From sequence record KT919972.1: DNA of 64,000 bases; one strand, 5' to 3'. The position numbers were made by a program, and so were the translations under genes. Below the pieces are notes generated by a model that did not search any database, was not told where the DNA came from, and saw only the letters and a list, made by a program, of their open reading frames with translations. Positions 8,879 through 45,580 of this stretch are shown piece by piece. How positions within the stretch are numbered: position 1 is the first letter of the stretch; every line of letters begins with the position of its first letter.

Positions 8879-8979
8879 ATTTAAAAAAAATGCAAAAAGT
8901 GGTTGCGTTGGTCTCAAAAATCATTAATATAGACGGTGTTGAAGAGAACAACGCAACTAACTAAAAGAGAGAACATTAT

Positions 8980-9984
8980 ATGCAAGCTATCATCACAAAC
9001 GGTCTTTTTCGTAAAACTGAAATCAACGGCACTTACACTCTTATCGAACGAGTTTGGAATAGTTCAGATGCCGGTGAGAAAAACGGTCGTATGAAGATTA
9101 TGCTTGATGGTGCAGTACGTACTATTCGCGTAAACAAAGAAGACGTACAGTACGTAGACGAAGCTGACGCATCACAAACAGCAGTACCTGCACTTGCACC
9201 AGTCGTTGAAGCTGAAACTGAAGAACAAATTGCAGAGCGTATCACTGAAGCGTTCGAAGCGATGGACATCTTTACTGTCGGTGCAATCGCGGGTCACGTT
9301 AAATCGCTACTTATCTCAGGTGCAGCGGGTGTGGGTAAGACGTTCACACTTGAACGCGAGTTAAATCAAGCTCAAGAACGCGGTGATATCACATTCAAGA
9401 AAGTTGCAGGTACATGTTCTGGTATCGGTCTGTTCACAAAACTATGGGAATGCCGTCACCCTGATTCAGTTCTTCTTCTAGATGACGTAGACGTTTTCAA
9501 AGATGAAGATCAAATGAACGTTCTAAAAGCAGCACTAGACACTGGTGAAGAGCGTTGGGTTTCATGGGCGAAAGCAAGTTCTTACTTAGAAGAGCAAGGC
9601 ATCGATCAAGAATTCTTGTTTGAAGGTACAGTAATCTTTATCTCAAACAAAGACTTTGACCGTGAACTTGAAGCGAATACTAAACTTTCACCGCACTTCA
9701 GCGCACTGATTTCACGTAGCATCTACCTTGACTTAGGTGTACATACAAAAGAAGAAATCATGGTTCGCATCAAGCAAGTTGTAGCAGCAACTACAATGCT
9801 AGAAGATCTAGGTCTAAACGCAGCACAAATCGCTGACATGATAGCTTGGATTGAGAAACACATGCTTGAACTACGTGCTCTATCGCTTCGTACATGTTTA
9901 CACATTGCTGATATGATGCTAACATCACCGACTAAATGGGAAATGCTTGCTAAGATGACTATGCTATCTAAGAAGCGTAAATAA
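8980..9984 (+). CDS. AAA+ family ATPase
   Basis: Walker A GAAGVGKT, Walker B LLLDD, FISN sensor-like segment, SRS. Confidence 0.85.
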   Translation: MQAIITNGLFRKTEINGTYTLIERVWNSSDAGEKNGRMKIMLDGAVRTIRVNKEDVQYVDEADASQTAVPALAPVVEAETEEQIAERITEAFEAMDIFTVGAIAGHVKSLLISGAAGVGKTFTLERELNQAQERGDITFKKVAGTCSGIGLFTKLWECRHPDSVLLLDDVDVFKDEDQMNVLKAALDTGEERWVSWAKASSYLEEQGIDQEFLFEGTVIFISNKDFDRELEANTKLSPHFSALISRSIYLDLGVHTKEEIMVRIKQVVAATTMLEDLGLNAAQIADMIAWIEKHMLELRALSLRTCLHIADMMLTSPTKWEMLAKMTMLSKKRK

Positions 9985-9993
9985 ACTCTTTGA

Positions 9994-10015
9994 GGGGCTG
10001 TAAAGCCCCGTTTTT
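9994..10015 (+). terminator. Rho-independent terminator
   Basis: GGGGCT-GTAA-AGCCCC followed by GTTTTT. Confidence 0.7.
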
Positions 10016-10029
10016 CATACGAGGGAAAA

Positions 10030-11316: not shown

Positions 11317-11558
11317 TGAACATTATAGTCGAAAACGGCAACATTCAGCCGAACGACCAAGCGACATTATTTGCGGACGAAGAAGTTGTGAGAGTGCCTA
11401 GCACTTTCACACTTACTGACTTAGTTTGTCATCTTGGTCTATACAAATCAAAATCACAAGCCAGACAAGCGAAACGTGTTGGTGAAATCCCTCACGGTTA
11501 CAATGAATTCAAAGGCAATAAGAAAACGCCTTTGTACGTCTGGAACCCAACAGAGTAA
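11316..11558 (+). CDS. small protein with an S4-like RNA-binding motif
   Basis: LTDLVCHLGLYKSKSQARQ resembles the S4-type helix pair at the TyrRS C-terminus. Confidence 0.5.
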   Translation: MNIIVENGNIQPNDQATLFADEEVVRVPSTFTLTDLVCHLGLYKSKSQARQAKRVGEIPHGYNEFKGNKKTPLYVWNPTE

Positions 11559-30461: not shown

Positions 30462-30488
30462 AAAAAAGGGCAGCACAATGCCGCCCTT
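30462..30488 (-). terminator. terminator after the DUF2828 gene
   Basis: - strand: AAGGGCGGCA-TTG-TGCTGCCCTTTTTT. Confidence 0.75.
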
Positions 30489-30497
30489 ATCACTTAT

Positions 30498-31934
30498 TTA
30501 AAAACTGTAGCGTTCGACGCCTACAGTTTTCATCATGATCTTGATTGGCTCAAGCTCACCACCCAACAGTGAAGTCAAGATAGATGGGCTACAACCAGAT
30601 ACCAGTGCAGTACCCGCTTCACCAGCTTTAACCGGAACGTTGCCAAGACGACCACGAATGTTCCAGAAGACCAGTTGTGGCATTTCATAACCAGCACGTG
30701 CGTACTTGGCTTTGATTGCATCGAAGTTCGCAGGTTCACCGCGACCGTACCAACCACCACCAGTGTTTGCTTGATCGAATTCCATGTCACTCATGATAAG
30801 CAACTTGGTTGGCATATCTTCTTGTGAAAGATTTGCACGCTTCGCACGCTCTAGCAGAACATCAAAGCACTTACCGATGTTCGTACTCATGTCTTCGCCT
30901 GAACGATTCATGTTATCAAGACGCTCTTTCAATGAGCTACCGCGCAACTGGTGGAAGTGCGGGTCGCTTGAGAACGAAATGAATTGATCTTTGAAGATGC
31001 CTTCATTGCGTTCAGCAACATAAATCCCAAGAGACATTGCAACTTGCTTACAAGTCACACCTGAATGGTCTGTACCTGCGTTGATTGGCGTGCTCATAGA
31101 GCCAGACACGTCAACAACAGGGATGATGCGTTCATCAGAACCTTCCATGTAGTTTGGCAGAGCTTTCCATTGCTCGTTCGCTACAGACGCATTACCGTGA
31201 CTAACGCTCTTAACGACATCGTATGGGAACAATGCGCCAGCGTTGATCTTCGCTTCACCTTTTTGAAGTGACTCGATGTAGCTTGTGTAACGAGCTGAAG
31301 CGTTACGACCGAATGCTTGTTGATAACGAGCAGACGCTACAGAAGGCAACTTACCGAAGTCGATTGCATCCCATTTTTGCGCACACATCTTCTGCTCAAC
31401 AGTGTCAGACAGAAGCGACAGAATCTTACGCCACTGCTTCGCAGTCACGCCAAGAGACTTGATTGTGCGCTTGAACACATGACCGTTTTTGCTGTTTTCA
31501 CGTGGGAACCACTTCGCAGCAAGACCATTCTTGTCATTGACAATTGCGTTCGACCACATTGTAATCGCATCTTTTTCAAGACGTGTACCGAAAGCAGAAA
31601 TCAAGTCATCGTAACGACCTAGTTCTGGAATTTTCGACATTACAGCACGAGCTACGTCAGGCTGTTCATTACAAAGTTTAGTGAATAGAGTACGGAAAGT
31701 ACCACGTTCACCCGCACCACCTCGAACATCACGAGACCACAAAAGAATGCGAGTCGCTAGTTCTGGGTTTTCTGCAAACGCACGACCGAACAGTGTTTTA
31801 GACTGATCGTTGCCACGCATAGCAGCAATACCGAAGAACAAGTTTAGACACTCGTTACCTGAAGTGCTGTGAGTAACTGCACCGTTTGCTGTGCGTGAAT
31901 CGTTTGTTTGCATTGCGTTCATAAATACTGACAT
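30498..31934 (-). CDS. DUF2828 family helical-domain + vWA protein (Ro60/TROVE-like architecture)
   Basis: RDVRGGAGER, GRYDDL, AAKWFPRE in the helical part; vWA MIDAS DVSGSM, LLIMSDMEFD, LVFWN. Confidence 0.88.
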   Translation of the reverse strand: MSVFMNAMQTNDSRTANGAVTHSTSGNECLNLFFGIAAMRGNDQSKTLFGRAFAENPELATRILLWSRDVRGGAGERGTFRTLFTKLCNEQPDVARAVMSKIPELGRYDDLISAFGTRLEKDAITMWSNAIVNDKNGLAAKWFPRENSKNGHVFKRTIKSLGVTAKQWRKILSLLSDTVEQKMCAQKWDAIDFGKLPSVASARYQQAFGRNASARYTSYIESLQKGEAKINAGALFPYDVVKSVSHGNASVANEQWKALPNYMEGSDERIIPVVDVSGSMSTPINAGTDHSGVTCKQVAMSLGIYVAERNEGIFKDQFISFSSDPHFHQLRGSSLKERLDNMNRSGEDMSTNIGKCFDVLLERAKRANLSQEDMPTKLLIMSDMEFDQANTGGGWYGRGEPANFDAIKAKYARAGYEMPQLVFWNIRGRLGNVPVKAGEAGTALVSGCSPSILTSLLGGELEPIKIMMKTVGVERYSF

Positions 31935-31970
31935 TGTTCATTTCCTCATAATTAATTGCTGTAAAATGTC
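31930..31970 (-). promoter_or_regulatory. 5'-leader hairpin covering the DUF2828 start codon
   Basis: GACATT-TTACAGCAA-TTAATTATGAGGAAATGAAC-AATGTC; the 3' strand contains the ATG; T4-type early promoter GTTTACA..TATAAT (-10 at 31983-31988) just upstream. Confidence 0.6.
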
Positions 31971-32024
31971 TTTGATGAAGTGATTATACGCGAATTTTAA
32001 TGCATGTAAACACTTTTTTTTAAT

Positions 32025-35037: not shown

Positions 35038-36753
35038 ATGAGTTCTATTAATTTACCTGGCGGAGGACAACCTCTACCAAAATACGTCGAAGAAGCGCCT
35101 GTAAATGGGTTACTATACGGTCGTAAAGATGAAGCATGGGAGCCAATCCCTGAAGATTCACTAACACCGTTTCCATTAGGAACGACACCTAATTCATTCG
35201 ATGCAGAGACTGGCGACAGAGCCGCAGCAATCGCTCTAAGAGACGCTTATGCATCAGCAAACCCGTCATGGGTTGCGTTTTATGTAAACAACCCGACATC
35301 TGCGATTGACCTTGTATATGAAGACATTTCTGTTGGCGGGACAGTTGCTGAAAGACAAACGTATACAGGAACACAATGGATTTCACAGCGTATTGTTGAA
35401 GGGATACCCGGGCCAATCGGGCCATCAGGTGAAGGGTCAATCCCTCCATTCGCGTCGATTGCTGAACGCGATTCTTTCTTCGCGTCATCAGGGAATAAAT
35501 CACTATTGAAAAAAGGATTACCTGTATTCGTTCAGGAATTTGAAGGTCGAGCAAGCTCATATTATTGGAGAGGCGAGACAAACCCAAATACGTACGATGC
35601 TTCTAAGTTCTCACTAGCCGCAGTTCAATCAGGGAACGGTGATTTATACTTAGCAAATGCGCATAAGATATCTTCGTCAGGTCAGAATATAGCAATAACC
35701 AATATTATCGACAACGTGAGCTTTCACCCCGTATGGCAGACATACGAAGAAGGGAATACTGCAACGGTACGTGTGCGTTCCATCGAGTCTGTTAATGAAT
35801 ATTCTGATAAATCAGCACAGATAACTAACCCGCGTTGGGAACTAGTGCAGATGCCAAACAACAGAACGTTATACTCAGTTGTGGTTGATTTTGTCAATGC
35901 ATACGATGAAATTGATGTTGTCGTTTATAAAAACACAGATGAATATTACCAAACTAAAATATTCGATATTACACCGGGCGAAGTTGATGTATTAATCGAA
36001 CCACCGTTTGACATTCGTTCAATGGACGTGCTTGAGCTTGAGTTGCGCAACCCGAACTTAGATGTTGTAGTATGGGGTAACTTATCAACAGGAATCCCAT
36101 GGAATAAACCAACAACACGTGATTTTACCGATGAGACTGTTGTGATTCAACCTGATTTAGATGCAGTCGAAACAAGAGTAAGTGACATCGAAGCAAACGC
36201 GATTGTCACTGGGGATAATGTTTCTGAACTGACAAATGACGCGGGATATATTAGCGACAAAGACATCATTTTCCAGAAGAGCAATAATACTGGAACTAAC
36301 GTGTTAACGCTAAACGGGACAGGTGAGGAGGGTACTATCCCACTATCGCAAACCGATGAAAATGGGGTGTTATTCGAATACTCGTCAACTACTGATAATT
36401 TCAGACCACTTGAAGATAAACCAATGCACATCAAACTTAGAATAAGTATTGATCGTTCTGGTGGCGGGTCAGACCCTGAGATTATAACGTGGGTTGAATC
36501 AGCAGCGACAGACACAACAGTTCCTAATGCATTTACACAAGAAACATCAGCATTTCGAATGGTTGATCTGCAAACCGACCGTACATTATTTTTAATCGAT
36601 ACGATTTTAAATATGGACTCAAGTCGTTATTATCGCATAAGACTTCGTAATTTAAACGGCGACAATTTTGATGTTGATACATTCGGCCCGTTTACAACAA
36701 GTTCGGGTAATGATATTTTTGCACCCGCAGTTGAGTTTATGCTTAGTCGATAA
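35038..36753 (+). CDS. putative trimeric virion appendage protein with an N-terminal foldon-like motif
   Basis: [22 protein letters not shown] resembles the fibritin foldon [33 protein letters not shown] fibre-type motif. Confidence 0.6.
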   Translation: [571 protein letters not shown]

Positions 36754-36778
36754 AAGAGCCGAAAGGCTCTTTTTTTAT
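36754..36778 (+). terminator. Rho-independent terminator
   Basis: AAAAGAGCC-GAAA-GGCTCTTTTTTT. Confidence 0.9.
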
Positions 36779-36789
36779 TTTGAAGAAAC

Positions 36790-36814
36790 AAAAAAACCTG
36801 CTCAAGGCAGGTTT
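36790..36814 (-). terminator. terminator ending the tRNA/ncRNA transcript
   Basis: - strand: AAACCTGC-CTTGA-GCAGGTTTTTTT. Confidence 0.8.
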
Positions 36815-36829
36815 AGATGTGCAATACAC

Positions 36830-37073
36830 AGACATTCGAGAAGTGTTTTATCGTCTTTCCTTAAATCTCATTTGACTATAACGATGTTTCTCATCGGAAA
36901 AATACCCATGATTCGGCATGAGTCCTATTTCGTTTGACAGTACGAACACCGTCTTAATGGTCATTTCCTACCATGAGAATGCGTCAGGCTCACGTCATCA
37001 CTGAGAAAGCAGCTAGTGCGCCTCATTACTATTAAAGTTTGCTTTGATTTGTAATGATTGCTGTACAATGTCT
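36830..37073 (-). ncRNA. structured ncRNA A (244 nt, helix+ACAGCAA family)
   Basis: ends pair (AGACATT/AATGTCT); ACAGCAA follows the 5' strand; 39-nt 3' block shared with ncRNA B. Confidence 0.65.
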
Positions 37074-37084
37074 TATTGCGAATT

Positions 37085-37173
37085 TGGCGGAGATACTGAG
37101 ATTCGAACTCAGAGAACGCTATTAACGTCCGACACCTTAGCAGGGTGCTGTCATACCTTTAGACCATATCTCC
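37085..37173 (-). tRNA. tRNA-Ser(GCT)
   Basis: cloverleaf, long variable arm, loop CT-GCT-AA, encoded CCA. Confidence 0.93.
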
Positions 37174-37178
37174 GTAGA

Positions 37179-37358
37179 TCATTTCTTACCACGCTCTGCT
37201 TTGCTAATCTCGACAGCAGCGATTTGCGCGTTGGCTTCTTTCTCAGTGTCATGAGTACCAAGTACTCGACCTTTAAATGAAAGAGCAACCCATTTGTCGC
37301 CACGCTTCTCGACTTTCTCAACAAGCTTGTGATATTCATCAAATGTTTTAAGTTTCAT
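37179..37358 (-). CDS. small late protein with a capsid-targeting-like N-terminus (not in the ORF track)
   Basis: MKLKTFDEYHKLVEKVEKRGDKWVALSFKGRVLGTHDTEKEANAQIAAVEISKAERGKK* (59 aa); GAGGG SD; TATAAATA at 37384-37391. Confidence 0.8.
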   Translation of the reverse strand: MKLKTFDEYHKLVEKVEKRGDKWVALSFKGRVLGTHDTEKEANAQIAAVEISKAERGKK

Positions 37359-37410
37359 GTGTCATCCCTCAGTTATTTTATTGTATTTATAACTGAACGA
37401 CTTTTAAACA

Positions 37411-37606
37411 GTGGCATGCTGCTCCCATGCTCAGACACATATTTGCTCTTAATGCAGGCGTGTGCCACGCGCAGCGCAGATCCCATTCGATAGTTTAACG
37501 ACCAGCGGGACTCTTAGCAGGTCTACACATAGCCTTTCAGCTATATCTTCTTTCAAGACCATAGTGTCGTACGGTCTATTCACTCTCTTTCGATTCGCGT
37601 TGCTAA
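37411..37606 (-). ncRNA. unidentified structured RNA
   Basis: several hairpins and no coherent ORF, directly 3' of tRNA-Leu(CAA). Confidence 0.45.
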
Positions 37607-37613
37607 GTGAATT

Positions 37614-37690
37614 TGGTGCCCAACCCGAGATTCGAACTCGGAACTCCTAGTGTTTGAAACTAGTGCCTCTGCCAATTGGACTAGTTGGGC
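37614..37690 (-). tRNA. tRNA-Leu(CAA), short variable loop
   Basis: cloverleaf, CTAGT-TTCAAAC-ACTAG, CCA. Confidence 0.9.
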
Positions 37691-37701
37691 TTGAATAAAC
37701 T

Positions 37702-37793
37702 GCCGCGACTCTTTAATCCCTAACACCTGTCAGCTTTCGCTCGGCTGAGACCGTTTTTCAACGGCGGTAGTCTAGCTTCGTATAGAACGCGGC
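37702..37793 (-). ncRNA. unidentified four-way-junction-like RNA
   Basis: closing GCCGCG/CGCGGC with three internal hairpins. Confidence 0.5.
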
Positions 37794-37806
37794 TTATGCT
37801 AGAATT

Positions 37807-37883
37807 TGGTACGCACGGGCGGATTCGAACCGCCATCCCTGAGATTTTAAGCCTCATGCCTCTGCCAATTGGACCAAGTGCGC
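37807..37883 (-). tRNA. tRNA-Leu(TAA), short variable loop
   Basis: TGAGG-CTTAAAA-TCTCA, CCA. Confidence 0.92.
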
Positions 37884-37885
37884 AT

Positions 37886-37959
37886 TGGAGCTCGAACAGG
37901 GAATCGAACCCTGACCTGCGGATTTGCAATCCGTCATACTTCCATTATACGATTCGAGC
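37886..37959 (-). tRNA. tRNA-Cys(GCA)
   Basis: loop TT-GCA-AA, U73, CCA. Confidence 0.92.
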
Positions 37960-37971
37960 ATAAATGTACTT

Positions 37972-38048
37972 TGGGGTGACAGACGGGGATCGAACCCGCA
38001 TCTTCCGGAATCACAACCCGGGGGTATTTCCACTTCACCCACTGCCAC
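37972..38048 (-). tRNA. tRNA-His(GTG)
   Basis: loop TT-GTG-AT, C73, CCA; the encoded -1 base is T rather than G. Confidence 0.88.
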
Positions 38049-38174
38049 ACCAAAGTACACTTAAAAGTTTGCATTATGTCTTGGAGAAATAGATAAATCT
38101 ACTAGCAACACCGCCGTCGCTACCTGCAATACTTTGGGATGTTTACGACATCAAACGAATGCGCTTCCTGTGCA

Positions 38175-38414
38175 TTAATCAGTTTTCTTTAAGTAGATTC
38201 TATCAGGCGATAGTTCTCTTGTAAACATGTTTTTGAAATAAATTTCGATATCTGCTTCAGTCGTTGAAGACTCAATTTCAAGAGCACGCTCAAGAATCTT
38301 GTTACGCTTAAACCCAGCGCGCCAACAGTCAAACATAAGTCTGTCCATGCGTTGAAGCTTTTCAATTTGATTCGGGTTTACGTATTCGTGAGTTTCAAGT
38401 AATACAGGAGTCAT
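38175..38414 (-). CDS. hypothetical protein
   Basis: 79 aa, GAG SD. Confidence 0.7.
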   Translation of the reverse strand: MTPVLLETHEYVNPNQIEKLQRMDRLMFDCWRAGFKRNKILERALEIESSTTEADIEIYFKNMFTRELSPDRIYLKKTD

Positions 38415-38439
38415 AATTTATTTCTCATCATATAAAGAA

Positions 38440-38513
38440 TGGTAGTCCCTAGTGGAATCGAGCCACTTCTTTCTCTGTGTAAAAGAGACGTACTGCCATT
38501 ATACTAAGGGACC
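38440..38513 (-). tRNA. tRNA-Val(TAC)
   Basis: TCTCT-TTTACAC-AGAGA; T loop CTCGA variant; CCA. Confidence 0.88.
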
Positions 38514-38519
38514 AAAATT

Positions 38520-38593
38520 TGGAGCGGGTACACGGACTCGAACCGAGACGAACGACTTGGAAGGACGTCATGCTACCATTACATCATACCCGC
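38520..38593 (-). tRNA. tRNA-Gly(TCC)
   Basis: loop CT-TCC-AA, GCG acceptor, U73, CCA. Confidence 0.9.
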
Positions 38594-38782
38594 ATTGTTA
38601 ATCTGAAGCGTCGAACAAATCACGTATTGCACGTAAATTCGTAAGCTCTACAGTAAGTGTTCTAATATAGAACGGGTTGGTCTCATTCGCGAGACATTTT
38701 TCAACATATCGAATTTTATCGCGTATGTTGCCCTTGCTTAGTGTAAAGTAGTCATGCTTCGTAACCTCTTTGTTTTTGAATT

Positions 38783-38858
38783 TGGAGGTGACACCGATAC
38801 TCGAAATCGGATCTTACGCCGTATGAAAGCGTTGCTCTGCCACTTGAGCTACATCACC
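38783..38858 (-). tRNA. tRNA with CAT anticodon (Met or Ile2)
   Basis: ACGCT-TTCATAC-GGCGT, CCA; identity ambiguous. Confidence 0.8.
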
Positions 38859-39091
38859 AATTGCAGTAATTAACTCATTTAATCGCACACTGGCTGACAC
38901 CATATATTCATGGTCTGAGTGAGGAACCACATAGTGGGTACTGTTACCTCTGCTTAGTTTTGATTGTTTTACATGACGATAACTAGAAACGTTCATAATA
39001 ATGCCACGCGATACATCCTATATCGCTACTAACATCTAAGTTAGCGTATCTTGCCTTTCGGCTGTAGTGTCGTTTCCGACGAATTAAGTAC

Positions 39092-39319
39092 AGACAATAC
39101 CGAAGTGTTTTTTCGTCTTTTGCATAAATCGGAGTTGACTAGCTTATTGTTTCTCAACAAGCAAATATCGTCTGTTTCAGCGACGCGCCTATCTGACTAT
39201 TTCTAGACAGAGAGAATCTTTCCTTTCAAGCTGCGCCTAAGCAAGCTCAGGTTAAAATCAGCCCAGGTTAAGATCATCACTTCTTTTAAGTAATTTCAAT
39301 TGTTTGCTGTATATTGTCT
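39092..39319 (-). ncRNA. structured ncRNA B (228 nt, helix+ACAGCAA family)
   Basis: ends pair (AGACAATA/TATTGTCT); ACAGCAA follows the 5' strand; 3' block shared with ncRNA A. Confidence 0.65.
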
Positions 39320-39382
39320 CTCTCACCATGCTCGTGATATGCCGAAGCAAAGTATCATTTGTCGCATGATAAGAGCTTAATA

Positions 39383-39458
39383 TGGCACGCCGTATGAGAT
39401 TCGAACTCATAACCCCATCCTTAGAAGGGACGTGCTCTTCCAATTGAGCTAACAGCGC
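39383..39458 (-). tRNA. tRNA-Arg(TCT)
   Basis: loop CT-TCT-AA, CCA. Confidence 0.92.
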
Positions 39459-39532
39459 ATTGAAAAGATTCGAACCATGAACTAGTGTAGACGATGGTAG
39501 TAAAGAGAGTCTACGCTCATGTGTTCGAAATT

Positions 39533-39607
39533 TGGTGGACACGCAGGGAGTCGAACCCTATCTTCCTCATTGCAAGTGAGGCGCTTTCCCAATTAAGCTA
39601 ACGGCCC
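39533..39607 (-). tRNA. tRNA-Ala(TGC)
   Basis: CCTCA-CTTGCAA-TGAGG, G3:U70; irregular lower acceptor stem. Confidence 0.82.
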
Positions 39608-39615
39608 ATATTTTT

Positions 39616-39828
39616 TTACAACTGTGTGATTGAAATATATTCCCAACCGTATAAACCTTCAAGTTCTTCAATCGGCTCACCAACAATGTCAGAAATATAT
39701 TCAGCAACTTTTGCTTCAACTTCTTCATTAGATAATTCTTCACTAACGGAAAAAACATCTTCGTTATTGTTGCCACCGAAATCCCCACCAATGTCATATT
39801 CACACCATACAGAAATATATACCATTAC
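39616..39828 (-). CDS. small acidic hypothetical protein
   Basis: ORF between a tRNA and a late gene. Confidence 0.6.
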   Translation of the reverse strand, partial: VMVYISVWCEYDIGGDFGGNNNEDVFSVSEELSNEEVEAKVAEYISDIVGEPIEELEGLYGWEYISITQL

Positions 39829-39840
39829 AATCACCAATTT

Positions 39841-40116
39841 TTACATATATTCAATAATATCAAAGTTGCCATGAAGCATGAAATTAGTTGCTTCTTGATC
39901 AAGCTCTGAGAAGAACTTTCGTACTTTATCTCGTGTAGAAAGCTTCAATTCACCGTTCGAATCAAGCTTCATACCTATTGACGATACGAAATCAGCAAAT
40001 GCAGCAGCGTCTTTACTGTCAGCGTATACATACGGAATCTTACCGTCATGAGTGTCTACGCCAGACCCACGATGCTTTGCTTCGTTAAGATATTCAGAAA
40101 ATGTTTTAATAGACAT
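39841..40116 (-). CDS. late protein with a capsid-targeting-like N-terminus
   Basis: MSIKTFSEYLNEA; GAGG SD; TATAAATA at 40147-40154. Confidence 0.8.
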   Translation of the reverse strand: MSIKTFSEYLNEAKHRGSGVDTHDGKIPYVYADSKDAAAFADFVSSIGMKLDSNGELKLSTRDKVRKFFSELDQEATNFMLHGNFDIIEYM

Positions 40117-40179
40117 GTTATTACCTCTAAAATGTAGTTACATGACTATTTATATCATGATAACACTTTCTAATCAATA

Positions 40180-40254
40180 TGGTGCTCCCGTTCGGAATCG
40201 AACCGAATTCTGCGGTTTACAAGACCGCTGCATCGCCATCAATGCTTCAGGAGC
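40180..40254 (-). tRNA. tRNA-Thr(TGT)
   Basis: GCGGT-CTTGTAA-ACCGC, CCA. Confidence 0.93.
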
Positions 40255-40260
40255 GTAACT

Positions 40261-40375
40261 GAGTGTTATTACTAGCGTCGTCCAGACCAGTGATACCGAC
40301 ACTGAAGAGGAATCGAACCTCGAACTTTTCTTTTCATCAGAAGAATATTAGTAAATTGTTTGCTGAAAACACTCT
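40261..40375 (-). ncRNA. circularly permuted tRNA-mimic (YrlA-like) RNA
   Basis: closing GAGTGTT/AACACTC + TCAGCAA; then T arm GAGG-TTCGATT-CCTC, looped acceptor-like stem CAGTG/CACTG, GG-containing D-like hairpin. Confidence 0.65.
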
Positions 40376-40383
40376 ATGGTATT

Positions 40384-40457
40384 TGGCTGGGGATAACAGA
40401 TTCGAACTGATACCAACGCATTCAAAGTACGTTATGCTGCCTTTACACCAATCCCCA
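40384..40457 (-). tRNA. tRNA-Gln(TTG)
   Basis: T1-A72, loop CT-TTG-AA, G73, CCA. Confidence 0.92.
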
Positions 40458-40476
40458 ATTGTTCTTAAATTATCTT

Positions 40477-40552
40477 TGGCGGAACCGACGGGTTTCGAAC
40501 CCGCTACCTTCTCCGTGACAGGGAGACATGCAACCTTTTACACCTCGGCTCC
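40477..40552 (-). tRNA. tRNA-Asp(GTC)
   Basis: TCTCC-CTGTCAC-GGAGA, G73, CCA. Confidence 0.93.
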
Positions 40553-40621
40553 CCAAAGACAACTTAAATTAGTTGCTTTGTTTTTTCAAGTTCACACTTA
40601 ACGGTAGTGACTCTCCGAATT

Positions 40622-40697
40622 TGGCGCTTCATGTTGGACTCGAACCAACGACTCTCTGATTAACAGTCAGACACTCTACCAACTGAGTTAATGAAGC
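40622..40697 (-). tRNA. tRNA-Asn(GTT)
   Basis: TCTGA-CTGTTAA-TCAGA, G73, CCA. Confidence 0.93.
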
Positions 40698-40698
40698 G

Positions 40699-40773
40699 TG
40701 GCGGGCGTGGAGAATTTCGAAATCTCGACTTGCAAGTTAACAGCTTGCTACTCTGCCTCTGAGTTACACACCC
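40699..40773 (-). tRNA. tRNA-Asn(GTT), second copy
   Basis: GCAAG-CTGTTAA-CTTGC, G73, CCA. Confidence 0.88.
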
Positions 40774-40785
40774 TTGAATTTAAAC

Positions 40786-40843
40786 AGTAATCCTTTTTGC
40801 TTTTTCCAAATAAAAGTTTTGTATTGTTTGCTGTAAGATTACT
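40786..40843 (-). ncRNA. minimal helix+ACAGCAA RNA (58 nt)
   Basis: AGTAATCT/GGATTACT closing helix, TACAGCAA, internal CTTTT-ATTTGGA-AAAAG hairpin. Confidence 0.55.
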
Positions 40844-40848
40844 TAAAC

Positions 40849-40922
40849 TGGCAGGGGCATAGAGATTCGAACTCTAACGAACGGGTTTGGAATCCGTCAT
40901 GCTGCCTTTACATCATGCCCCT
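40849..40922 (-). tRNA. tRNA-Trp(CCA)
   Basis: loop TT-CCA-AA, G73, CCA. Confidence 0.9.
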
Positions 40923-40928
40923 AAAATT

Positions 40929-41002
40929 TGGTAGTCCCTAAGAGAATCGAACTCTTACCAAGCGATTATCGGTCGCACGCTCTACCGTTGAGCTAAGGGA
41001 CT
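40929..41002 (-). tRNA. tRNA-Ile(GAT)
   Basis: loop CC-GAT-AA, CCA. Confidence 0.9.
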
Positions 41003-41065
41003 AAAGTGTGCGCATTTCAGCGCACTGTTAATCGGTTAAGTGACTAAACTTCCCGGTTAACTAAT

Positions 41066-41164
41066 TGGCGGAAGACTAGGGATTCGAACCCTAACATCAC
41101 CTCCCGGTGACCGACGGTTTTCAAGACCGTTGCCGCTACCCAGAATCTTTCGGCTAAGCCTTCC
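41066..41164 (-). tRNA. tRNA-Ser(TGA), enlarged D loop
   Basis: ACGGT-CTTGAAA-ACCGT, long variable arm, 99 nt, CCA. Confidence 0.9.
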
Positions 41165-41171
41165 ATTAATT

Positions 41172-41248
41172 TGGTTGCGTGGGGCTGGATTCGAACCAAC
41201 GACCTTGAGCTTATGAAACTCACGAGCTGACCACTGCTCTACCCCGCA
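41172..41248 (-). tRNA. tRNA-Met(CAT), initiator-like body
   Basis: (T)GCGGGG-TA-GAGC..., loop TT-CAT-AA, ACCA; one extra base in the acceptor 3' strand, and the GGG/CCC anticodon-stem triplet is absent. Confidence 0.8.
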
Positions 41249-41258
41249 ATTATTCAAC

Positions 41259-41345
41259 AGCTTGCGTTCTTTGGTCTGTTTATCGCTGTCTGAACTGAGT
41301 TCGTCGAGTGATCAATAGATTAAGTTGAATTGCAGTATGCAAGCT
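41259..41345 (-). ncRNA. small helix+ACTGCAA RNA (87 nt)
   Basis: AGCTTGC/GCAAGCT closing helix followed by AT-ACTGCAA. Confidence 0.55.
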
Positions 41346-41350
41346 AAAAC

Positions 41351-41436
41351 TGGTGGAGCGTAGAGGAATCGAACCTCTCTACCCGTTAAGGGTCAGGGAT
41401 TTACAGTCCCCTGTCTCACCTTGAGACGTACGCTCC
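41351..41436 (-). tRNA. tRNA-Tyr(GTA)
   Basis: loop CT-GTA-AA, long variable arm, CCA. Confidence 0.93.
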
Positions 41437-41442
41437 AGAATT

Positions 41443-41517
41443 TGGTTCTCCCGACGAGATTCGAACTCGCGCACTTCACCTTGAAAGGGTGATGACCTAC
41501 CGTTAGTCCACGGGAGA
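41443..41517 (-). tRNA. tRNA-Glu(TTC)
   Basis: TCACC-CTTTCAA-GGTGA, CCA. Confidence 0.92.
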
Positions 41518-41580
41518 ATTAAATTGTATATTGATTTGCAAGCTAATCAACTCGCAAAGCGATACACAATGTATCTAATT

Positions 41581-41657
41581 TGGTACGCCGCCCTGGACTC
41601 GAACCAGACACCTGAGAGTTAAAAGCTCCCTGCTCTTCCATGATGAGCTACCGACGC
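41581..41657 (-). tRNA. tRNA-Lys(TTT)
   Basis: GGGAG-CTTTTAA-CTCTC, CCA. Confidence 0.92.
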
Positions 41658-41668
41658 ATTATAAAATC

Positions 41669-41742
41669 TGGTGGGTCCACAGAGATTCGAACTCTAACTG
41701 AGGGATTAAAAGTCCCATATGCTACCGTTACATCATAGACCC
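41669..41742 (-). tRNA. tRNA-Lys(TTT), second copy
   Basis: loop CT-TTT-AA, different body, CCA. Confidence 0.9.
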
Positions 41743-41748
41743 AGAATG

Positions 41749-41823
41749 TGGTGCACCCCCTCGGAATCGAACCGAGCACTGCGGGACTTCAATCCGCCGC
41801 TTTTCCTGATAAGCTAAGGGTGC
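41749..41823 (-). tRNA. tRNA-Phe(GAA)
   Basis: loop TT-GAA-GT (G37), CCA. Confidence 0.88.
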
Positions 41824-41824
41824 A

Positions 41825-41902
41825 TGGTACGCAAGAAGAGATTCGAACTCTTAACTTCTGGTTTCTAAGACCAGTGCCTCTGCCAGATTGGGCTACTTGC
41901 GC
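41825..41902 (-). tRNA. tRNA-Leu(TAG), short variable loop
   Basis: CTGGT-CTTAGAA-ACCAG, CCA. Confidence 0.92.
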
Positions 41903-42111
41903 ATTAATTCGTTTTCATCGATTACGGAAATTTCTATTGATGACGGAATAACAATTGAGTTAGTAATTCCCGCTTCTTTCAATAAATCGACTAAATTTTG
42001 TATATACTGATTAGCTTTCGATGCTGGTAAATCACCGACATCAACTCTAAACACTACACGTTCGTTTTCTTTCAGTGTCAATTTTGACACATCTTTAATT
42101 ATGTCATTCAT
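41893..42111 (-). CDS. small protein resembling a segment of the T4-type portal (gp20)
   Basis: RVVFRVDVGDLPASKANQYIQNL; AGAAG SD; downstream of tandem early promoters; stop overlaps the tRNA-Leu 5' end. Confidence 0.65.
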   Translation of the reverse strand: MNDIIKDVSKLTLKENERVVFRVDVGDLPASKANQYIQNLVDLLKEAGITNSIVIPSSIEISVIDENELMRK

Positions 42112-42115
42112 GTTC

Positions 42116-42244
42116 TTCTCTATTGTACATGATGTTTATATCGTTGTAAACATCTTTTTGAAAAAACTTTTCATTCAGCTTTGAATGATATTTCGCTTTT
42201 CTCTATTGTACATGATGTTTTCGTCATTGTAAACATCTTTTTTG
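42116..42244 (-). promoter_or_regulatory. two tandem T4-type early promoters (direct repeat)
   Basis: AAAAAGATGTTTACAA...CATCATGTACAATAGAGAA occurs at about 42116-42160 and 42199-42244. Confidence 0.8.
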
Positions 42245-42448
42245 AATTTATTTTGAAGAACTTAACGTTTTCATTTTCTATGTGTTAATATTAACACTCG
42301 CTCAAGACATCATAAACACTAATTTATGAAAAGTTCGCTAAATTCTATCATCTCGACAGTACTTAACGAGATACGGTCCTAAGCGTATCAATTCGTAGAA
42401 GCAGTTTCGGGAATGTGCGAAAGCGAGCTTCAATCAAACAACACTAAC

Positions 42449-42524
42449 TGGCACCCAATACAAGATTCGAACTTGTAACCTTCGCCTTCGTAGGGCGCTG
42501 CTCTTCCAATTGAGCTAATCGGGC
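42449..42524 (-). tRNA. tRNA-Arg(ACG)
   Basis: loop CT-ACG-AA, CCA. Confidence 0.92.
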
Positions 42525-42532
42525 ATTAAAAC

Positions 42533-42609
42533 TGGTCCGTGACAAGCGATTCGAACGCTTAACTTCTCCGCCCCAAACGGAGTACTCTACCAGATTGAGC
42601 TAGTCACGG
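42533..42609 (-). tRNA. tRNA-Pro(TGG)
   Basis: CTCCG-TTTGGGG-CGGAG, C1-G72, A73, CCA. Confidence 0.93.
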
Positions 42610-42618
42610 ATTTTAAAT

Positions 42619-42692
42619 TGGTCGGGACGAAGAGACTCGAACTCTTACCACATGCTCCCAAAGCATGAACGCTACCTTTACGCCACGTCCCG
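42619..42692 (-). tRNA. tRNA-Pro(TGG), second copy
   Basis: CATGC-TTTGGGA-GCATG, C1-G72, A73, CCA. Confidence 0.92.
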
Positions 42693-42769
42693 TTTGTTCT
42701 TTAACTTTGTTTATCATACTCTGTAATCAAAGTACGTTAAACAAAATTTCTTAACTTTCTTACGCCCAT

Positions 42770-42793
42770 AAAAAAAGGACGCTATTTGCGTCC
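42770..42793 (-). terminator. Rho-independent terminator
   Basis: - strand: AGGACGC-AAATA-GCGTCCTTTTTTT. Confidence 0.8.
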
Positions 42794-43064
42794 TCAAGTA
42801 TACTTCTATGTTATACTATCGGACTACAAGAGGGTATCCCACTTCTGGTTCGCAATCGGATTCGCTAGATACACGAATTCTGAGCGCAGAAAATCGCTGC
42901 GTAATGTCTCAGATGAATGTGTAAACGAATGCGTCATTGAATGCTCTCTTGAAATAAAAATTAAAATTTGTTTTGTTTCTTTATAGTACTTATAACACTA
43001 AATCTGACGATTTGCGGTATTTTCGCAGAAAATTGAAAAAAAATTTCAACTTTCTGCGATTTTA

Positions 43065-43301
43065 TTAACCTAAGTGTTTTCGCTTGTTCATTTCAACAAG
43101 AATTTCGTCGTTATAGTGCTTATTAAGCTCAACGAATTTCTTGTGTTGATCTGAAGTCAATTCGTTTGTATCGTTCAGATGCTTCAAAAAACCAAGAGGC
43201 TTACGAAACGACTTGCGATATTCATTTAGACGCTCATCTGTTAGATTGCGCAATTGTTTCGGAGTCAGTAACGTTTTGTTGATATTAAATGTTCCGCTCA
43301 T
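43065..43301 (-). CDS. hypothetical protein
   Basis: GAGG SD before MSGTFNINK. Confidence 0.7.
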   Translation of the reverse strand: MSGTFNINKTLLTPKQLRNLTDERLNEYRKSFRKPLGFLKHLNDTNELTSDQHKKFVELNKHYNDEILVEMNKRKHLG

Positions 43302-43327
43302 GTTATACCTCACTAGTTTATCAAAAA

Positions 43328-43443
43328 TGGTAGTCGGGGCTGGATTCGAACCAGCGACCACGTGCTTAACAGGCAATTGAAGGAGTGCTGGAGCGATACT
43401 TGTCAGTATCATTCTTCGTGCTCTACCACTGAGCTACCCGACT
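43328..43443 (-). ncRNA. tRNA-Asn(GTT) body with a 41-nt structured insertion at position 28/29
   Basis: removing 43376-43416 gives a regular 75-nt cloverleaf with CGTGC-CTGTTAA-GCACG and CCA. Confidence 0.8.
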
Positions 43444-43448
43444 ATAAA

Positions 43449-43745
43449 TTATTTGTCTTGCAATTGAGTGTAGTCACCTTTCATGAACGCATCCATGAAT
43501 TCACGTGTACTACTAAACTCTTTGAAATCACGCGGGCCATCATATTTCGTAATATAACGAACTTTCCCATCTCTAACCGTGATTTTACCATGACCCCAAT
43601 TCACAGAATCAGTTTTCTTACTAATTTGAACTTGCTTCTTCTGCAACCTGCGAACAAGTTCTTCTAAAAATCTACTGTCATCAGCAGCGCCAGATTGAAA
43701 TCCGCCGCCACCAAATTCAATTAGGAATTCACCAAACGTTTTCAT
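43449..43745 (-). CDS. late protein with a capsid-targeting-like N-terminus
   Basis: MKTFGEFLIE; GAGG SD; CATAAATA at about 43774-43781. Confidence 0.8.
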   Translation of the reverse strand: MKTFGEFLIEFGGGGFQSGAADDSRFLEELVRRLQKKQVQISKKTDSVNWGHGKITVRDGKVRYITKYDGPRDFKEFSSTREFMDAFMKGDYTQLQDK

Positions 43746-43776
43746 ACTTCTTCCTCTAAACTCTAAAAGAAAGTAT

Positions 43777-44301
43777 TTATGATTTCGTTTTGAACTTCAA
43801 ATTTCGATATTCAAAGTTTCGTTTGTCTTTTTTATTGTAATACGTATCCCAATCAATAGAAACAGGACAGTTCTTACTACCCACACGAGATAAGAAAACG
43901 TCGTGAGTGTCTTTGTAAGCTTCTCTGAGAGACTTTACTTGTTTCTCATGATGAGTTATGTACTCAGCACACGCTTTGTTGTACTCAGCTTTAGAGAAGC
44001 GATCATCGCCCGTGAAATTACCGTTTAGATACGGTCGAATAACACGAACACGTTCTTTAGACCATCCCATACTAAAACTATTTTCAATTCGACCGATGAT
44101 TTCACCAGTCTTTTTACATCGTGCAAGAATAACCCAGCAACGCTCTCTTCGAAAGTCTTTTCGAGTGAATACATTGATGTACTTATCAACATACTCTTGA
44201 TAGCGTTCGTTATATATTTTACGAAGTCTGCTACGTTCTTCAATCGTCATAGCAGCACGTTCTTCTTTAGAGAACGCTTCAACGAACTTCAATGGTTTCA
44301 T
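43777..44301 (-). CDS. hypothetical basic protein
   Basis: GAGG SD before MKPLKF. Confidence 0.75.
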   Translation of the reverse strand: MKPLKFVEAFSKEERAAMTIEERSRLRKIYNERYQEYVDKYINVFTRKDFRRERCWVILARCKKTGEIIGRIENSFSMGWSKERVRVIRPYLNGNFTGDDRFSKAEYNKACAEYITHHEKQVKSLREAYKDTHDVFLSRVGSKNCPVSIDWDTYYNKKDKRNFEYRNLKFKTKS

Positions 44302-44314
44302 TATAATTTCCTCT

Positions 44315-44419
44315 TGGCGCCGCTCGTGTGAATCGAACACACGTCAAACACAACACCTCTTCCACCCAATTAGAGTTTCGAAGTAAGAGCTAATCAGCAT
44401 TTCAGAGCAGCCGAGCGTT
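44315..44419 (-). ncRNA. atypical tRNA-like RNA
   Basis: T arm GTGTG-TTCGATT-CACAC, partial acceptor CGCTC/GAGCG, 3' GCCA; interior does not form a normal D/anticodon arm. Confidence 0.55.
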
Positions 44420-44559
44420 ATTTCTACATACAAGACTTCGACATCTCACATGCACTTTCTACTCGGTCCCAGTGATTCGGTACCAACGTAGGTTGCGAGC
44501 CTACGTCTGCACTAATGTTGGGAATACACTGTGTATTGTACGCCAGTTAGCGGCATTTT

Positions 44560-44790
44560 TTAAAGATAGCTGTCAAAAACATCATCACTGACTTCTTCAA
44601 TCTTGATGTCAGCGTAACATTCGTTCGCAACTGCTCGAATTTCATCTATTGAAACTGTACCTGAGTACAAAACAACAGAGTCGTTCGGAATCACAACATC
44701 ACACATGTATCTGTCAAACATTTCAGTTCTGAAATCGTAATCGACGTAGCAACCGTGCATTGATGTGATAACTAGCAATTTATGTGACAT
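44560..44790 (-). CDS. hypothetical protein
   Basis: GAGG SD; promoter TTGACA at about 44845-44850 upstream. Confidence 0.7.
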   Translation of the reverse strand: MSHKLLVITSMHGCYVDYDFRTEMFDRYMCDVVIPNDSVVLYSGTVSIDEIRAVANECYADIKIEEVSDDVFDSYL

Positions 44791-44868
44791 AATGTTTTCC
44801 TCGTGTAGTTGATAATGTGTATACTACACGTTGATGAAACGTCTGTCAACAACTTTTTCAATTTATTT

Positions 44869-44946
44869 TGGTGACCCCAACAGGACTCGAACCTGTAACC
44901 TACCGATTATGAGTCGGTTGCTCTAACCGTGTTGAGCTATAGGGCC
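44869..44946 (-). tRNA. tRNA-Ile2(CAT, lysidine type)
   Basis: GGCCCTA acceptor, ACCGA-CTCATAA-TCGGT; body resembles bacterial ileX. Confidence 0.88.
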
Positions 44947-44947
44947 A

Positions 44948-45316
44948 TCATTTCTCCAGAAATCGACCAACTTTCGCAGCGAAGATGTTTGCTTCTTCTG
45001 TAATACGAGCAGTCGATTTAATTTGATGAAAAGCGTCTTGTTGATGTAGCTCATCGAGCTTATCTGCACATTTCATCAATTCTTTTATAGTTTGCATAAT
45101 CTCAATATTATCAAACTGACTTGTATCAGGGTGATAATTTAGATTGTCTAATATCGGCAGAACTTGTTGATAGCAACCCATGCCAATGAAGTTTATCATA
45201 AGTCTATACTGCATTTCAACAGCAAATGTACAATATTTTCGAAGATTGCGCTTTACAATCTCACAACGATGCAATATACAATCAAGTTCGTCATTTATGT
45301 CATTAAACTTATTCAT
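44948..45316 (-). CDS. hypothetical protein
   Basis: GAGGG SD before MNKFND. Confidence 0.7.
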   Translation of the reverse strand: MNKFNDINDELDCILHRCEIVKRNLRKYCTFAVEMQYRLMINFIGMGCYQQVLPILDNLNYHPDTSQFDNIEIMQTIKELMKCADKLDELHQQDAFHQIKSTARITEEANIFAAKVGRFLEK

Positions 45317-45330
45317 AAACCCTCGAAAAT

Positions 45331-45455
45331 TGGAGGAGAGTACGGGATTTGAACCACGTGACAAAAAGATTTACCTAGTTATTAAGGTTTGCAGCATGAA
45401 TGCTTGTCAGTATTCTTTAACATTCTTTTGCTCTACCAGACTGAGCTAACTCTCC
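45331..45455 (-). ncRNA. tRNA body with the anticodon loop replaced by a ~54-nt module
   Basis: GGAGAGT acceptor, D arm, AAAGA/TCTTT stem enclosing GAATACT-GACA-AGCATTC-ATGCTGCAAA, T arm, TCCA. Confidence 0.7.
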
Positions 45456-45461
45456 AGAATT

Positions 45462-45580
45462 TGAAGGTGAAGTGCAGGACTCGAACCTGCGACCTCCGGC
45501 GTGCATGTGAATGCAGAATGAAATCTTATCAGACTTCGTTTTTTTTGGCCGGCATTCTAACCAACTGAACTAACTTCACC
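45462..45580 (-). ncRNA. Asp-like tRNA body with the anticodon loop replaced by a ~47-nt module
   Basis: D arm GTTC-AGTTGGTTA-GAAT, CCGGC/GCCGG stem enclosing GAAGTCT-GATA-AGATTTC-ATTCTGCAT; no CCA. Confidence 0.7.

Follow-up and report, generated by a model that had tools for sequence, protein, structure and literature searches.

The 64,000-nt stretch of Vibrio phage phi-Grn1 (KT919972.1), a KVP40-like Schizotequatrovirus, that was analyzed here (the window; all positions refer to it and coincide with those of the record) carries a minus-strand tRNA cluster at 37085-45579, in which 28 tRNAs were called by ARAGORN and 30 tRNA-model matches were found by Rfam. Within the tRNA operon lie at least five small RNAs (A to E) that share a closing end module, which consists of a terminal helix, an unpaired ACAGCAA-type motif beside its 5' strand, and a conserved 3' end. 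A sixth copy of the module lies in the leader of a gene for a protein with a predicted Ro60-like fold, and in other phages the module accompanies genes of the same protein family. RNAs A to E are proposed to be a family cut from the tRNA operon transcript. The reading preferred here, with a probability of about 0.68, is that they would act as Y-RNA-like partners of the phage Ro-like protein, which would also regulate its own mRNA.

Long RNAs A and B

RNA A (246 nt; 36828-37073, minus strand; first letters AGACAUUGUACAGCAA, last letters AAUGUCUGU) and RNA B (230 nt; 39090-39319, minus strand; first letters AGACAAUAUACAGCAA, last letters UAUUGUCUGU) are paralogous long forms that were delimited by comparison and folding, with 5' modules that were also matched by the covariance model R1 described below. 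The records of phi-Grn1 and KVP40 have no annotation at either region. The original prediction had proposed two RNAs that each start with a helix strand plus ACAGCAA and end with the complement of that strand, with compensatory differences between the copies, and this was borne out. The 5' helix strands of A and B differ by a single U/A, which is compensated in the 3' strand, and the orthologues vary compensatorily too; the terminal helix of RNA B reads AGACAAU/AUUGUCU, with AGAUAAU/AUUAUCU in phage 1.081.O (fetched locus L004) and AGGCAAU/AUUGCCU in phage F86 (L006). The predicted ends at 37073 and 39319 were retained, and those at 36830 and 39092 were moved to 36828 and 39090 to include the 3' GU. 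Alignment with homologues, as had been suggested, found A and B conserved in about 50 Vibrio phage records at 70-100% identity. The earlier statement that neither contains a convincing open reading frame (ORF) held, as the longest ones on the transcribed strand have 38 amino acids in A and 39 in B, and so did the statement that each follows a tRNA, with RNA A beginning 11 nt past tRNA-Ser and RNA B 63 nt past tRNA-Arg. A promoter scan of 16.5 kb gave no promoter-like site directly upstream of either RNA.

Consensus folding was done using eight orthologues each of RNA A and RNA B. In both, the terminal helix P1 is followed by unpaired UACAGCAA, an A-rich stretch, and several hairpins; the motif of A and B reads G/A-UACAGCAA, and (U)UACAGCAA is single-stranded directly past the 5' strand. 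The order of elements in RNA A is the 7-bp P1, GUACAGCAA, internal hairpins, UAGUCAA, a second helix P2 (GAGA/UCUC) around the loop UUUAAGGAAAGACGAUAAAACACU, the 3' strand of P1, and GU. RNA B consists of P1, AUACAGCAA, three covarying hairpins, UAGUCAA, P2 (CCGA/UCGG), and CUGU, and the compensatory changes in its three hairpins include the GAGAAAC-loop hairpin. The 3' block that had been reported as common to A and B is present in both as claimed (GAGAAAC-loop hairpin, UAGUCAA, N4, GAUUUA, AAAGACGA, N, AAAACACUUC), and UAGUCAA is single-stranded in the consensus folding. P2 comprises 4 bp closing a conserved 26-nt A-rich loop, UUUAuG.AAAGACGAnAAAACAcU, and is separated by one nucleotide from the 3' strand of P1, after which the terminal GU follows. 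In a joint alignment of 15 A and B orthologues, 14 of them distinct, P2 was paired in all 14 distinct sequences with two covarying pairs (GC/CG/GU and CG/AU/UA), and the 3' block is therefore in part a small helix with a large conserved loop. The single-sequence folding-energy z was unremarkable for A (0.05) and modest for B (-2.3), so that the support for A and B comes from comparison across sequences rather than from thermodynamics.

A search of IMG/VR with a pattern of the 3' block returned two contigs only, and the full block is therefore considered specific to its clade. The 3' regions of A and B have just the strings AGUCAAA and GAAGACGnUAAA in common with the long RNAs of another clade, and comparison yielded no structure common to them; that the long forms are homologous between clades is no more than suggestive. 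In F86 and L090, A and B both read ACUGCAA for ACAGCAA and CUGA for CUGU, a paired change that suggests co-evolution with a common partner, or gene conversion.

The end module and RNAs C, D, and E

Reading of the spacers revealed that the same end module closes three more RNAs between tRNAs on the minus strand of the window. RNA C (118 nt; 40258-40375; AGAGUGUUUUCAGCAA ... AACACUCAGU) is a tRNA-like form between tRNA-Gln and tRNA-Thr, RNA D (60 nt; 40784-40843; AGUAAUCUUACAGCAA ... GAUUACUGU) is a minimal form between tRNA-Trp and tRNA-Asn, and RNA E (89 nt; 41257-41345; AGCUUGCAUACUGCAA ... GCAAGCUGU) lies between tRNA-Tyr and tRNA-Met. RNA C has the helix GAGUGU(U)/(A)ACACUC, the motif UUUCAGCAA, and the 3' end CAGU, and contains a hairpin resembling a T arm (loop GUUCGAUUC; GUUCGAWUC), in which compensatory changes occur; a 5-bp arm carrying a 7-nt loop comes next. 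The 5' parts of D and E are AGUAAUC-UUACAGCAA and AGCUUGC-AUACUGCAA, respectively. The original description as noncoding structured paralogues, and a modular reading as protein-binding scaffold RNAs, fits this evidence; the part that limited the family to two members does not, given C, D, E, and the mRNA leader in the window and the module in most of the fetched loci.

The module can be written as a 7-bp helix whose second pair is always G-C, one spacer nucleotide, U-A/U-C-A/U-G-C-A-A, and a 3' C-U/A-G-U. The helix strands ACAUU, ACAAU, GAGUGU, UAAUC, and CUUGC occur in the five RNAs and the leader, each with its own complement, and the outer A-U pair is mismatched in RNA C and the leader. RNAs A, B, D, and E end in CUGU; C and the leader have CAGU instead. 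The C, G, C, A, and A of the motif are invariant in 42 phage RNAs, and the two arms of the module stand about 30 to about 260 nt apart.

Eight 60-nt RNAs, all from non-Vibrio metagenomic phage loci, served to build the covariance model R1, which was run without filters on the window. RNA D ranked first (E = 9e-7) and the leader module second (E = 0.0015), and the 5' modules of B, A, and C took ranks 4 to 6. Three copies of TACAGCAA at 51230, 52542, and 52723 were rejected as chance matches; they lie inside ORFs and have no partner strand.

Rfam at gathering thresholds gave no family for RNA A or RNA B in a scan of the whole window, and at E ≤ 10 for 36700-39700, it again gave no family for either and no hammerhead, twister, hepatitis delta virus-like, or other ribozyme. 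The original prediction had seen in the shared 3' block a possible second protein-binding site or catalytic core. The latter is not supported by the ribozyme search, and for the former, the widely conserved and likely binding part is the end module, the 3' block being specific to the long forms.

The predicted Ro60-like protein and its leader

The protein gene (30498-31934, minus strand) encodes 478 amino acids with a DUF2828 alpha-solenoid (Pfam, E = 3e-29) and a DUF7788 vWA domain (E = 2e-46) and no other Pfam domain, and matches PHROG 850, which is annotated as "RNA-binding protein." The metal ion-dependent adhesion site motif is DVSGS, in which D275, S277, and S279 are invariant. An AlphaFold2 model made from a 29-sequence alignment had a pLDDT of 77 and a pTM of 0.73. 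In a Foldseek search of the PDB, the seven best structures were Ro60/TROVE proteins aligned over the full length at E ~1e-7, including Thermus phage phiLo Ro60, Deinococcus radiodurans Rsr, and Xenopus Ro60, and isolated vWA domains appeared only at E > 1e-3. The protein is thus predicted, from the model, to be a Ro60-like ring of helical repeats with a vWA domain.

The leader of this gene contains an end module at 31927-31971 (minus strand; R1 E = 0.0015). Its motif lies at 31971-31956, about 20 nt upstream of the start of the 478-amino-acid ORF. GACAUU is followed by UUACAGCAA, the Shine-Dalgarno sequence GAGGAAA is in the loop, and the 3' strand AAUGUC, which holds the start codon, is followed by AGU. 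A sigma-70-type promoter (TTTACA-16-TATAAT; 31983-32010, minus strand) precedes the leader module and was the best consensus match in the 16.5 kb scanned, and a terminator-like hairpin (30466-30488, minus strand) is directly past the coding sequence; the Ro-like gene is therefore a single-gene transcription unit. In several non-Vibrio loci from other clades, mini-modules of 35-45 nt are directly before the start of the Ro-like gene. Their helices differ (AGAAUUA/UAAUUCU, AGAUUUA/UAAAUCU, and others), the mini-modules abut or overlap the Shine-Dalgarno sequence, and three of them were R1 matches at E = 2e-4 to 5e-3.

Association of the module with the protein gene across phages

The DUF2828 protein family occurs in at least 710 phage records and more than 7,500 protein clusters. 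Among these records are Felixounaviruses (Felix O1-like) and phages of Listeria (P100-like), Staphylococcus, Enterococcus, Campylobacter, and Aeromonas, as well as mycobacteriophages; the mycobacteriophage homologues carry the annotation "Ro-like RNA binding protein." Eighty IMG/VR loci around homologues about 46-54% identical to the Ro-like protein were fetched, and the near-identical phage VH7D supplied one extra locus. In most fetched loci, a pattern scan detected the module, typically as two tandem RNAs, one of about 60 nt and one of 235-275 nt, immediately behind the gene, and a looser pattern gave 206 matches on the gene strand versus 21 on the opposite strand. With R1, the 1.49 Mb of locus sequence yielded 81 matches at E ≤ 0.01, without exception on the same strand as the DUF2828 gene. 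In the IMG/VR loci, 57 of 79 had an R1 match, and 44 of 72 matches were within 500 nt downstream of the gene and 3 within 100 nt upstream. Among 39 checked loci with module RNAs beside the gene, 28 have no tRNA gene, which places the association with the protein gene and not with tRNAs.

In the R1-fitted alignment, helix pairing was 99.2%, compared with 62% in shuffles and 26-52% with slid partner columns. The helix had 165 alignment cells altered on both sides, two-sided changes in six of the seven pairs, and G-U pairs, and the second pair was G-C in 69 of 69 sequences.

The arrangement is also found in named phages of separate groups. Escherichia coli phage humlepung (Felixounavirus) has four module RNAs in tRNA spacers just behind the Ro-like gene, Listeria phage AG20 (Pecentumvirus) has three just upstream of the gene, between it and a promoter, and Mycobacterium phage Moostard has three just behind it. 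A back-search with a 14-mer of the motif returned mostly chance matches; the full module was found in 7 of 80 loci, with the gene in 2 of the 7 compared with 0 of the other 73, which is weak support for the linkage. Matches to AGACAAUAUACUGAAA in other loci were apparently coding sequence and were dropped.

Two observations were made on neighborhoods of the gene. In AG20 (L095, ~7755-11503), the Ro-like gene and its three module RNAs have within a few kilobases a gene for a metal-dependent phosphohydrolase and, downstream, genes for an RtcB-type "tRNA splicing ligase" and an RNA ligase, which fits an RNA-repair setting. A full-length transfer-messenger RNA (L038, 8605-9054; Rfam, 75 bits) lies on a contig with the Ro-like gene and several module RNAs.

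Comparison with Ro60, Y RNAs, and translational operators

These phage RNAs were not found described in searches of Rfam 15 and the literature. For comparison, YrlA (RF02553), Yrn1, and Thermus phage phiLo Yrl1/2 with Ro60/Rsr were used. Canonical Ro60 is thought to contact a conserved 5'-strand motif in the terminal stem of Y RNAs, and canonical YrlA has GNCGAAN0-1G near its 5' end (PMC4201824). A Ro60 of phage origin is known to bind two Y-like RNAs that the phage encodes and, together with these, the host PNPase (PMC12135203). Like Y RNAs, the phage RNAs are modular, closed by a stem between the 5' end and the 3' end, and equipped with a conserved motif on the 5' side; they are encoded on the same strand beside a Ro60-type ring protein with a vWA domain, as several paralogues per genome, among which RNA C of phi-Grn1, with its T-arm-like hairpin and second 5-bp arm, may have a tRNA-like domain. 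The middle Moostard RNA has T and D arms and is a full-length match to the Rfam YrlA model at 37.9 bits (E = 5e-5), the best score among the relatives and below the gathering threshold of 69 bits; A and B had no match to YrlA. Unlike Y RNAs with such a domain, A, B, D, and E have no tRNA-like part, and the phage protein has DUF2828/DUF7788 and not TROVE, being Ro60-like by predicted fold only. Taken from sequence and model, the phage pair would be a system of the Ro/Y-RNA type in which both the protein family and the RNA motif differ.

In E. coli phage Bas63 (Felixounavirus), the Ro60-like gp130 is encoded directly upstream of a tRNA cluster in which the authors of a preprint suspected Y RNAs, suggesting that some annotated tRNAs might be these, and gp130 was reported to counter the Ppl defense system (10.1101/2024.10.10.617714). 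The candidates described here differ in being spacers between tRNAs and not annotated tRNAs. The related phage humlepung has module RNAs in the equivalent tRNA cluster.

Translational operators that mimic the primary RNA target of a protein are known from ribosomal-protein operons, T4 gp32, and RegA. The leader copy resembles them in that it spans the Shine-Dalgarno sequence and start codon of the mRNA of the protein concerned; regulation is putative here.

Comparison with Dictyostelid Class I RNA

The Ro-like nature of the protein is already in annotations, and the unexpected part is the resemblance of the module to Dictyostelid Class I RNA (RF01414; Aspegren 2004, Avesson 2011, Kjellin 2021). 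Class I RNAs are 42-65 nt long with a median of about 60 and are present in several differing copies per genome; they have a 6-bp stem with compensatory changes, a largely unpaired 11-nt motif beside the 5' strand, and an invariant 5' G paired with the C of a conserved 3' CUGU, and they have been judged unique to Dictyostelia (PMC7919456). In the Rfam consensus, a 6-bp terminal stem that opens with G is followed by CUUACAGCAA (preceded by C), an A/U-rich body, and a 3' C-U-G. RNA D matched the full RF01414 model at 31.8 bits (E = 8e-4 when 1.1 kb was searched and 0.0045 when 6.1 kb was searched), below the threshold of 41.5 bits, and RNA E matched weakly (16.6 bits); A and B had no match. Rfam at E ≤ 0.1 gave no Class I match in six other phage loci, possibly a filter effect of the larger search, and membership in Class I is not claimed.

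As in Class I RNAs, the closing stem of the phage RNAs is conserved in structure and not in sequence, with 7 bp. The motif beside the 5' strand reads CUUACAGCAA in D, GUACAGCAA in A, AUACAGCAA in B, UUUCAGCAA in C, and AUACUGCAA in E, and the invariant C, G, C, A, and A are the positions that are most conserved in PMC7919456. The 5' G pairs with the C of the 3' CUGU (the G-C pair found in 69 of 69 phage sequences), and the minimal forms of about 60 nt, the A/U-rich variable body, and the several differing copies per genome are likewise found in both. The phage helix is one outer pair longer, and the size range of 42-65 nt includes only D (60 nt), whereas A, B, C, and E have 246, 230, 118, and 89 nt. 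The phage RNAs lie in tRNA spacers or directly behind the protein gene and would be processed from operons or co-transcribed with that gene, whereas Class I RNAs are transcription units of their own with a Dictyostelium upstream sequence element (DUSE) about 60 nt upstream, and the phage RNAs have no DUSE promoter. The long (230-275 nt) and tRNA-like phage forms are not known in Dictyostelium. With the exception of the DUSE promoter and of the size of A, B, C, and E, all of the sequence and structure features listed above for Class I RNAs are seen in the phage module.

The likeness may be due to common descent, gene transfer, or convergence. The only direct binder shown for a Dictyostelium Class I RNA is CIBP/Rnp1A, a protein with RNA recognition motifs (RRM). 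Four proteins were pulled down with a Class I RNA, and among them is DDB_G0281243, which has no known function. DUF2828 proteins are mentioned in the literature for plants and a tardigrade. It is tentatively considered, at somewhat less than even odds, that the phage RNAs and Class I RNAs are one kind of RNA, defined by the closing stem, CUUACAGCAA, and the 3' CUGU, with DUF2828 Ro60-like proteins as the common partner.

Proposed function and alternatives

The end module, composed of the closing helix, UACAGCAA, and the 3' CUGU, would be the binding site of the Ro60-like ring protein. It is assigned to this protein because the DUF2828 gene is the only steady neighbor of the module across unrelated phages, because a copy of the module covers the translation start of that gene in several clades, because canonical Ro60 recognizes a 5'-strand motif at the terminal stem, and because a known phage Ro60 binds phage Y-like RNAs. 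The RNAs would then be functional counterparts of Y RNAs, with a constant module and a variable body. A second function may lie in the variable bodies: C could mimic a tRNA, A and B could act through the conserved region of UAGUCAA and the AAAGACGAnAAAACA loop, and the effect could be to recruit or gate a further factor, for example an exoribonuclease, a tRNA enzyme, or an enzyme of RNA repair. The leader module encloses the ribosome-binding site and start codon, by which the free protein would repress its own translation, and abundant RNAs would titrate the Ro-like protein and so relieve this feedback.

Several observations weigh against assigning the RNAs to the Ro-like protein. The window RNAs are on the same strand as the Ro-like gene and are 4.9-9.4 kb away from it in a separate transcription unit. 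Neither the canonical Ro-binding motif GNCGAAN0-1G nor the animal GGUCCGA is present, and (U)ACAGCAA stands in the equivalent place. Profile and sequence searches of the PDB returned armadillo-repeat noise with no significant match, the best TROVE hit having E = 1.2, so that the assignment to Ro60 needed the fold search, and the TM-scores of the fold matches were just 0.46-0.58 with a predicted model. No Rfam family was reached at its own threshold by the phage module RNAs, and literature searches found no binding, expression, or end-mapping data for them. The helix pairing was called on the R1-fitted alignment, which flatters structure; this bias aside, the five paralogues of one genome and orthologues read by hand give the same picture. 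In phage 1.081.O, the leader of the Ro-like gene has no module, and the orthologue of A (L004, 4083-4233) is 151 nt long without UAGUCAA, P2, and its loop. RNA B of this phage retains the 3' block, and the block is therefore dispensable in at least one copy.

The alternative that survives best, and is nevertheless unlikely, is that the module binds another protein, such as one of the RRM type like CIBP, a host chaperone, or another phage protein, and that the Ro-like gene is a mere neighbor in the pathway. The RRM protein CIBP/Rnp1A as direct binder of a Dictyostelium Class I RNA and the absence of the canonical Ro-binding motif both speak for it. Against it, DUF2828 is the sole consistent neighbor across unrelated phage groups (an RRM gene was not searched for in the loci), and the module in the DUF2828 leader in several clades is a classic sign of a protein that binds its own mRNA.

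A little less probable again is a role of the module as a processing or stability signal, for RNase P, RNase E, or the stopping of a 3' exonuclease, with no dedicated protein partner. In its favor, all five window RNAs are in tRNA spacers, the 7-bp helix resembles an acceptor stem in length, and the YrlA of Mycobacterium smegmatis is cut by RNase P. Yet tRNA genes are absent from 28 of the 39 loci with module RNAs beside the protein gene, and the invariant single-stranded ACAGCAA and the placement of the module over the Shine-Dalgarno sequence and AUG of one gene are left unexplained.

That the shared blocks are DNA elements, such as promoters, operators, recombination sites, or transposon ends, was the scenario under which the original prediction would have failed, and it is very improbable. 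In its favor, the terminal sequences form inverted repeats, and a copy of the motif lies upstream of a gene. The strand specificity relative to the gene (81 of 81 R1 matches) contradicts it, together with the compensatory changes that keep the pairing as the sequence drifts and that include G-U pairs, which would be A-C mismatches on the other strand; the arm spacing of about 30 to about 260 nt and the position of the leader copy downstream of the promoter -10 box also speak against it. Least credible of all is that A and B encode small proteins, for although hypothetical proteins are annotated over orthologous regions in some records, the longest ORFs are the 38 and 39 amino acids given above, several with non-ATG starts, orthologue indels are not multiples of three, and conservation tracks helices and loops and not codons.

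Other features of the region

A terminator-like hairpin (36794-36814, minus strand) directly past RNA A marks the end of the tRNA and noncoding RNA operon. Two tandem promoter-like sites, TTTACA-17-TACAAT, are located at 42122-42233 (minus strand), upstream of the tRNA block in which RNAs A to E lie. The surrounding 42112-42260 (minus strand) is a tandem duplicate of about 80 nt (AAAAAGAUGUUUACAA..AAACAUCAUGUACAAUAGAGAA) with one such site per copy.

Four further unannotated spacers of 116-255 nt (37359-37613, 37691-37806, 38594-38782, and 38859-39089, minus strand) contain hairpins and no end module, and in KVP40, a small ORF is annotated over part of one of these module-free spacers. The sequence AAUUC is found directly past the 3' end of many cluster tRNAs (spacers ending at 37084, 37613, 37806, 38782, and 40621, minus strand) and may serve as a common signal for processing.

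Three tRNA-like genes of 113-122 nt (43331-43443, 45334-45455, and 45466-45579, minus strand) match the Rfam tRNA model end to end, have a 40-50-nt insert in the place of the anticodon arm, and were not called by ARAGORN. Two of the three inserts have ...AAGAAUG...ACUGACAAG... in common. In the relatives L004 and L006, such genes, about 120 nt long, carry the annotation tRNA-Asn or tRNA-OTHER, and near them is a gene for a 2H-type "RNA ligase/cyclic nucleotide phosphodiesterase." The insert-bearing genes could be intron-containing tRNAs or decoys.

An RNase H-like gene (PF04308; 29924-30454, minus strand) is directly downstream of the Ro-like gene, past its terminator. The two genes stay together in the Vibrio-phage clade and L089, with a copy of the RNase H-like gene about 4 kb off in L050. 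The gene was rejected as a fixed partner; a tblastn match near the Ro-like gene was found in just 5 of 86 loci (4 adjacent and 1 at about 4 kb), and it is therefore not a general component.

Implications

The role of Class I RNAs has been unsettled since their discovery in 2004, and the phage RNAs point to a Ro-like DUF2828 partner as a hypothesis for it. The phage RNAs also challenge the published view of Class I as confined to Dictyostelia. If the two are one kind of RNA, Class I RNAs would not be an amoeba-specific invention tied to multicellularity and would instead be the eukaryotic branch of a Y-RNA-like system widespread in phages, by gene transfer or deep ancestry.

For the phages, module RNAs account for part of the long unannotated spacers in tRNA clusters. 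Since Bas63 gp130 was reported to counter a defense system, the RNAs may belong to a counter-defense or RNA-repair device. The protein family is found in phages used in research and therapy, including Felix O1-like, Listeria P100-like, Staphylococcus, Campylobacter, and mycobacterial phages. If A to E are partners of the Ro-like protein, the principle known from Ro60 and Y RNAs would also hold for a second family of proteins, with another recognition motif; a feedback loop on the mRNA of the protein itself would be suggested, and a family previously labeled "RNA-binding" by fold only would gain RNA partners.

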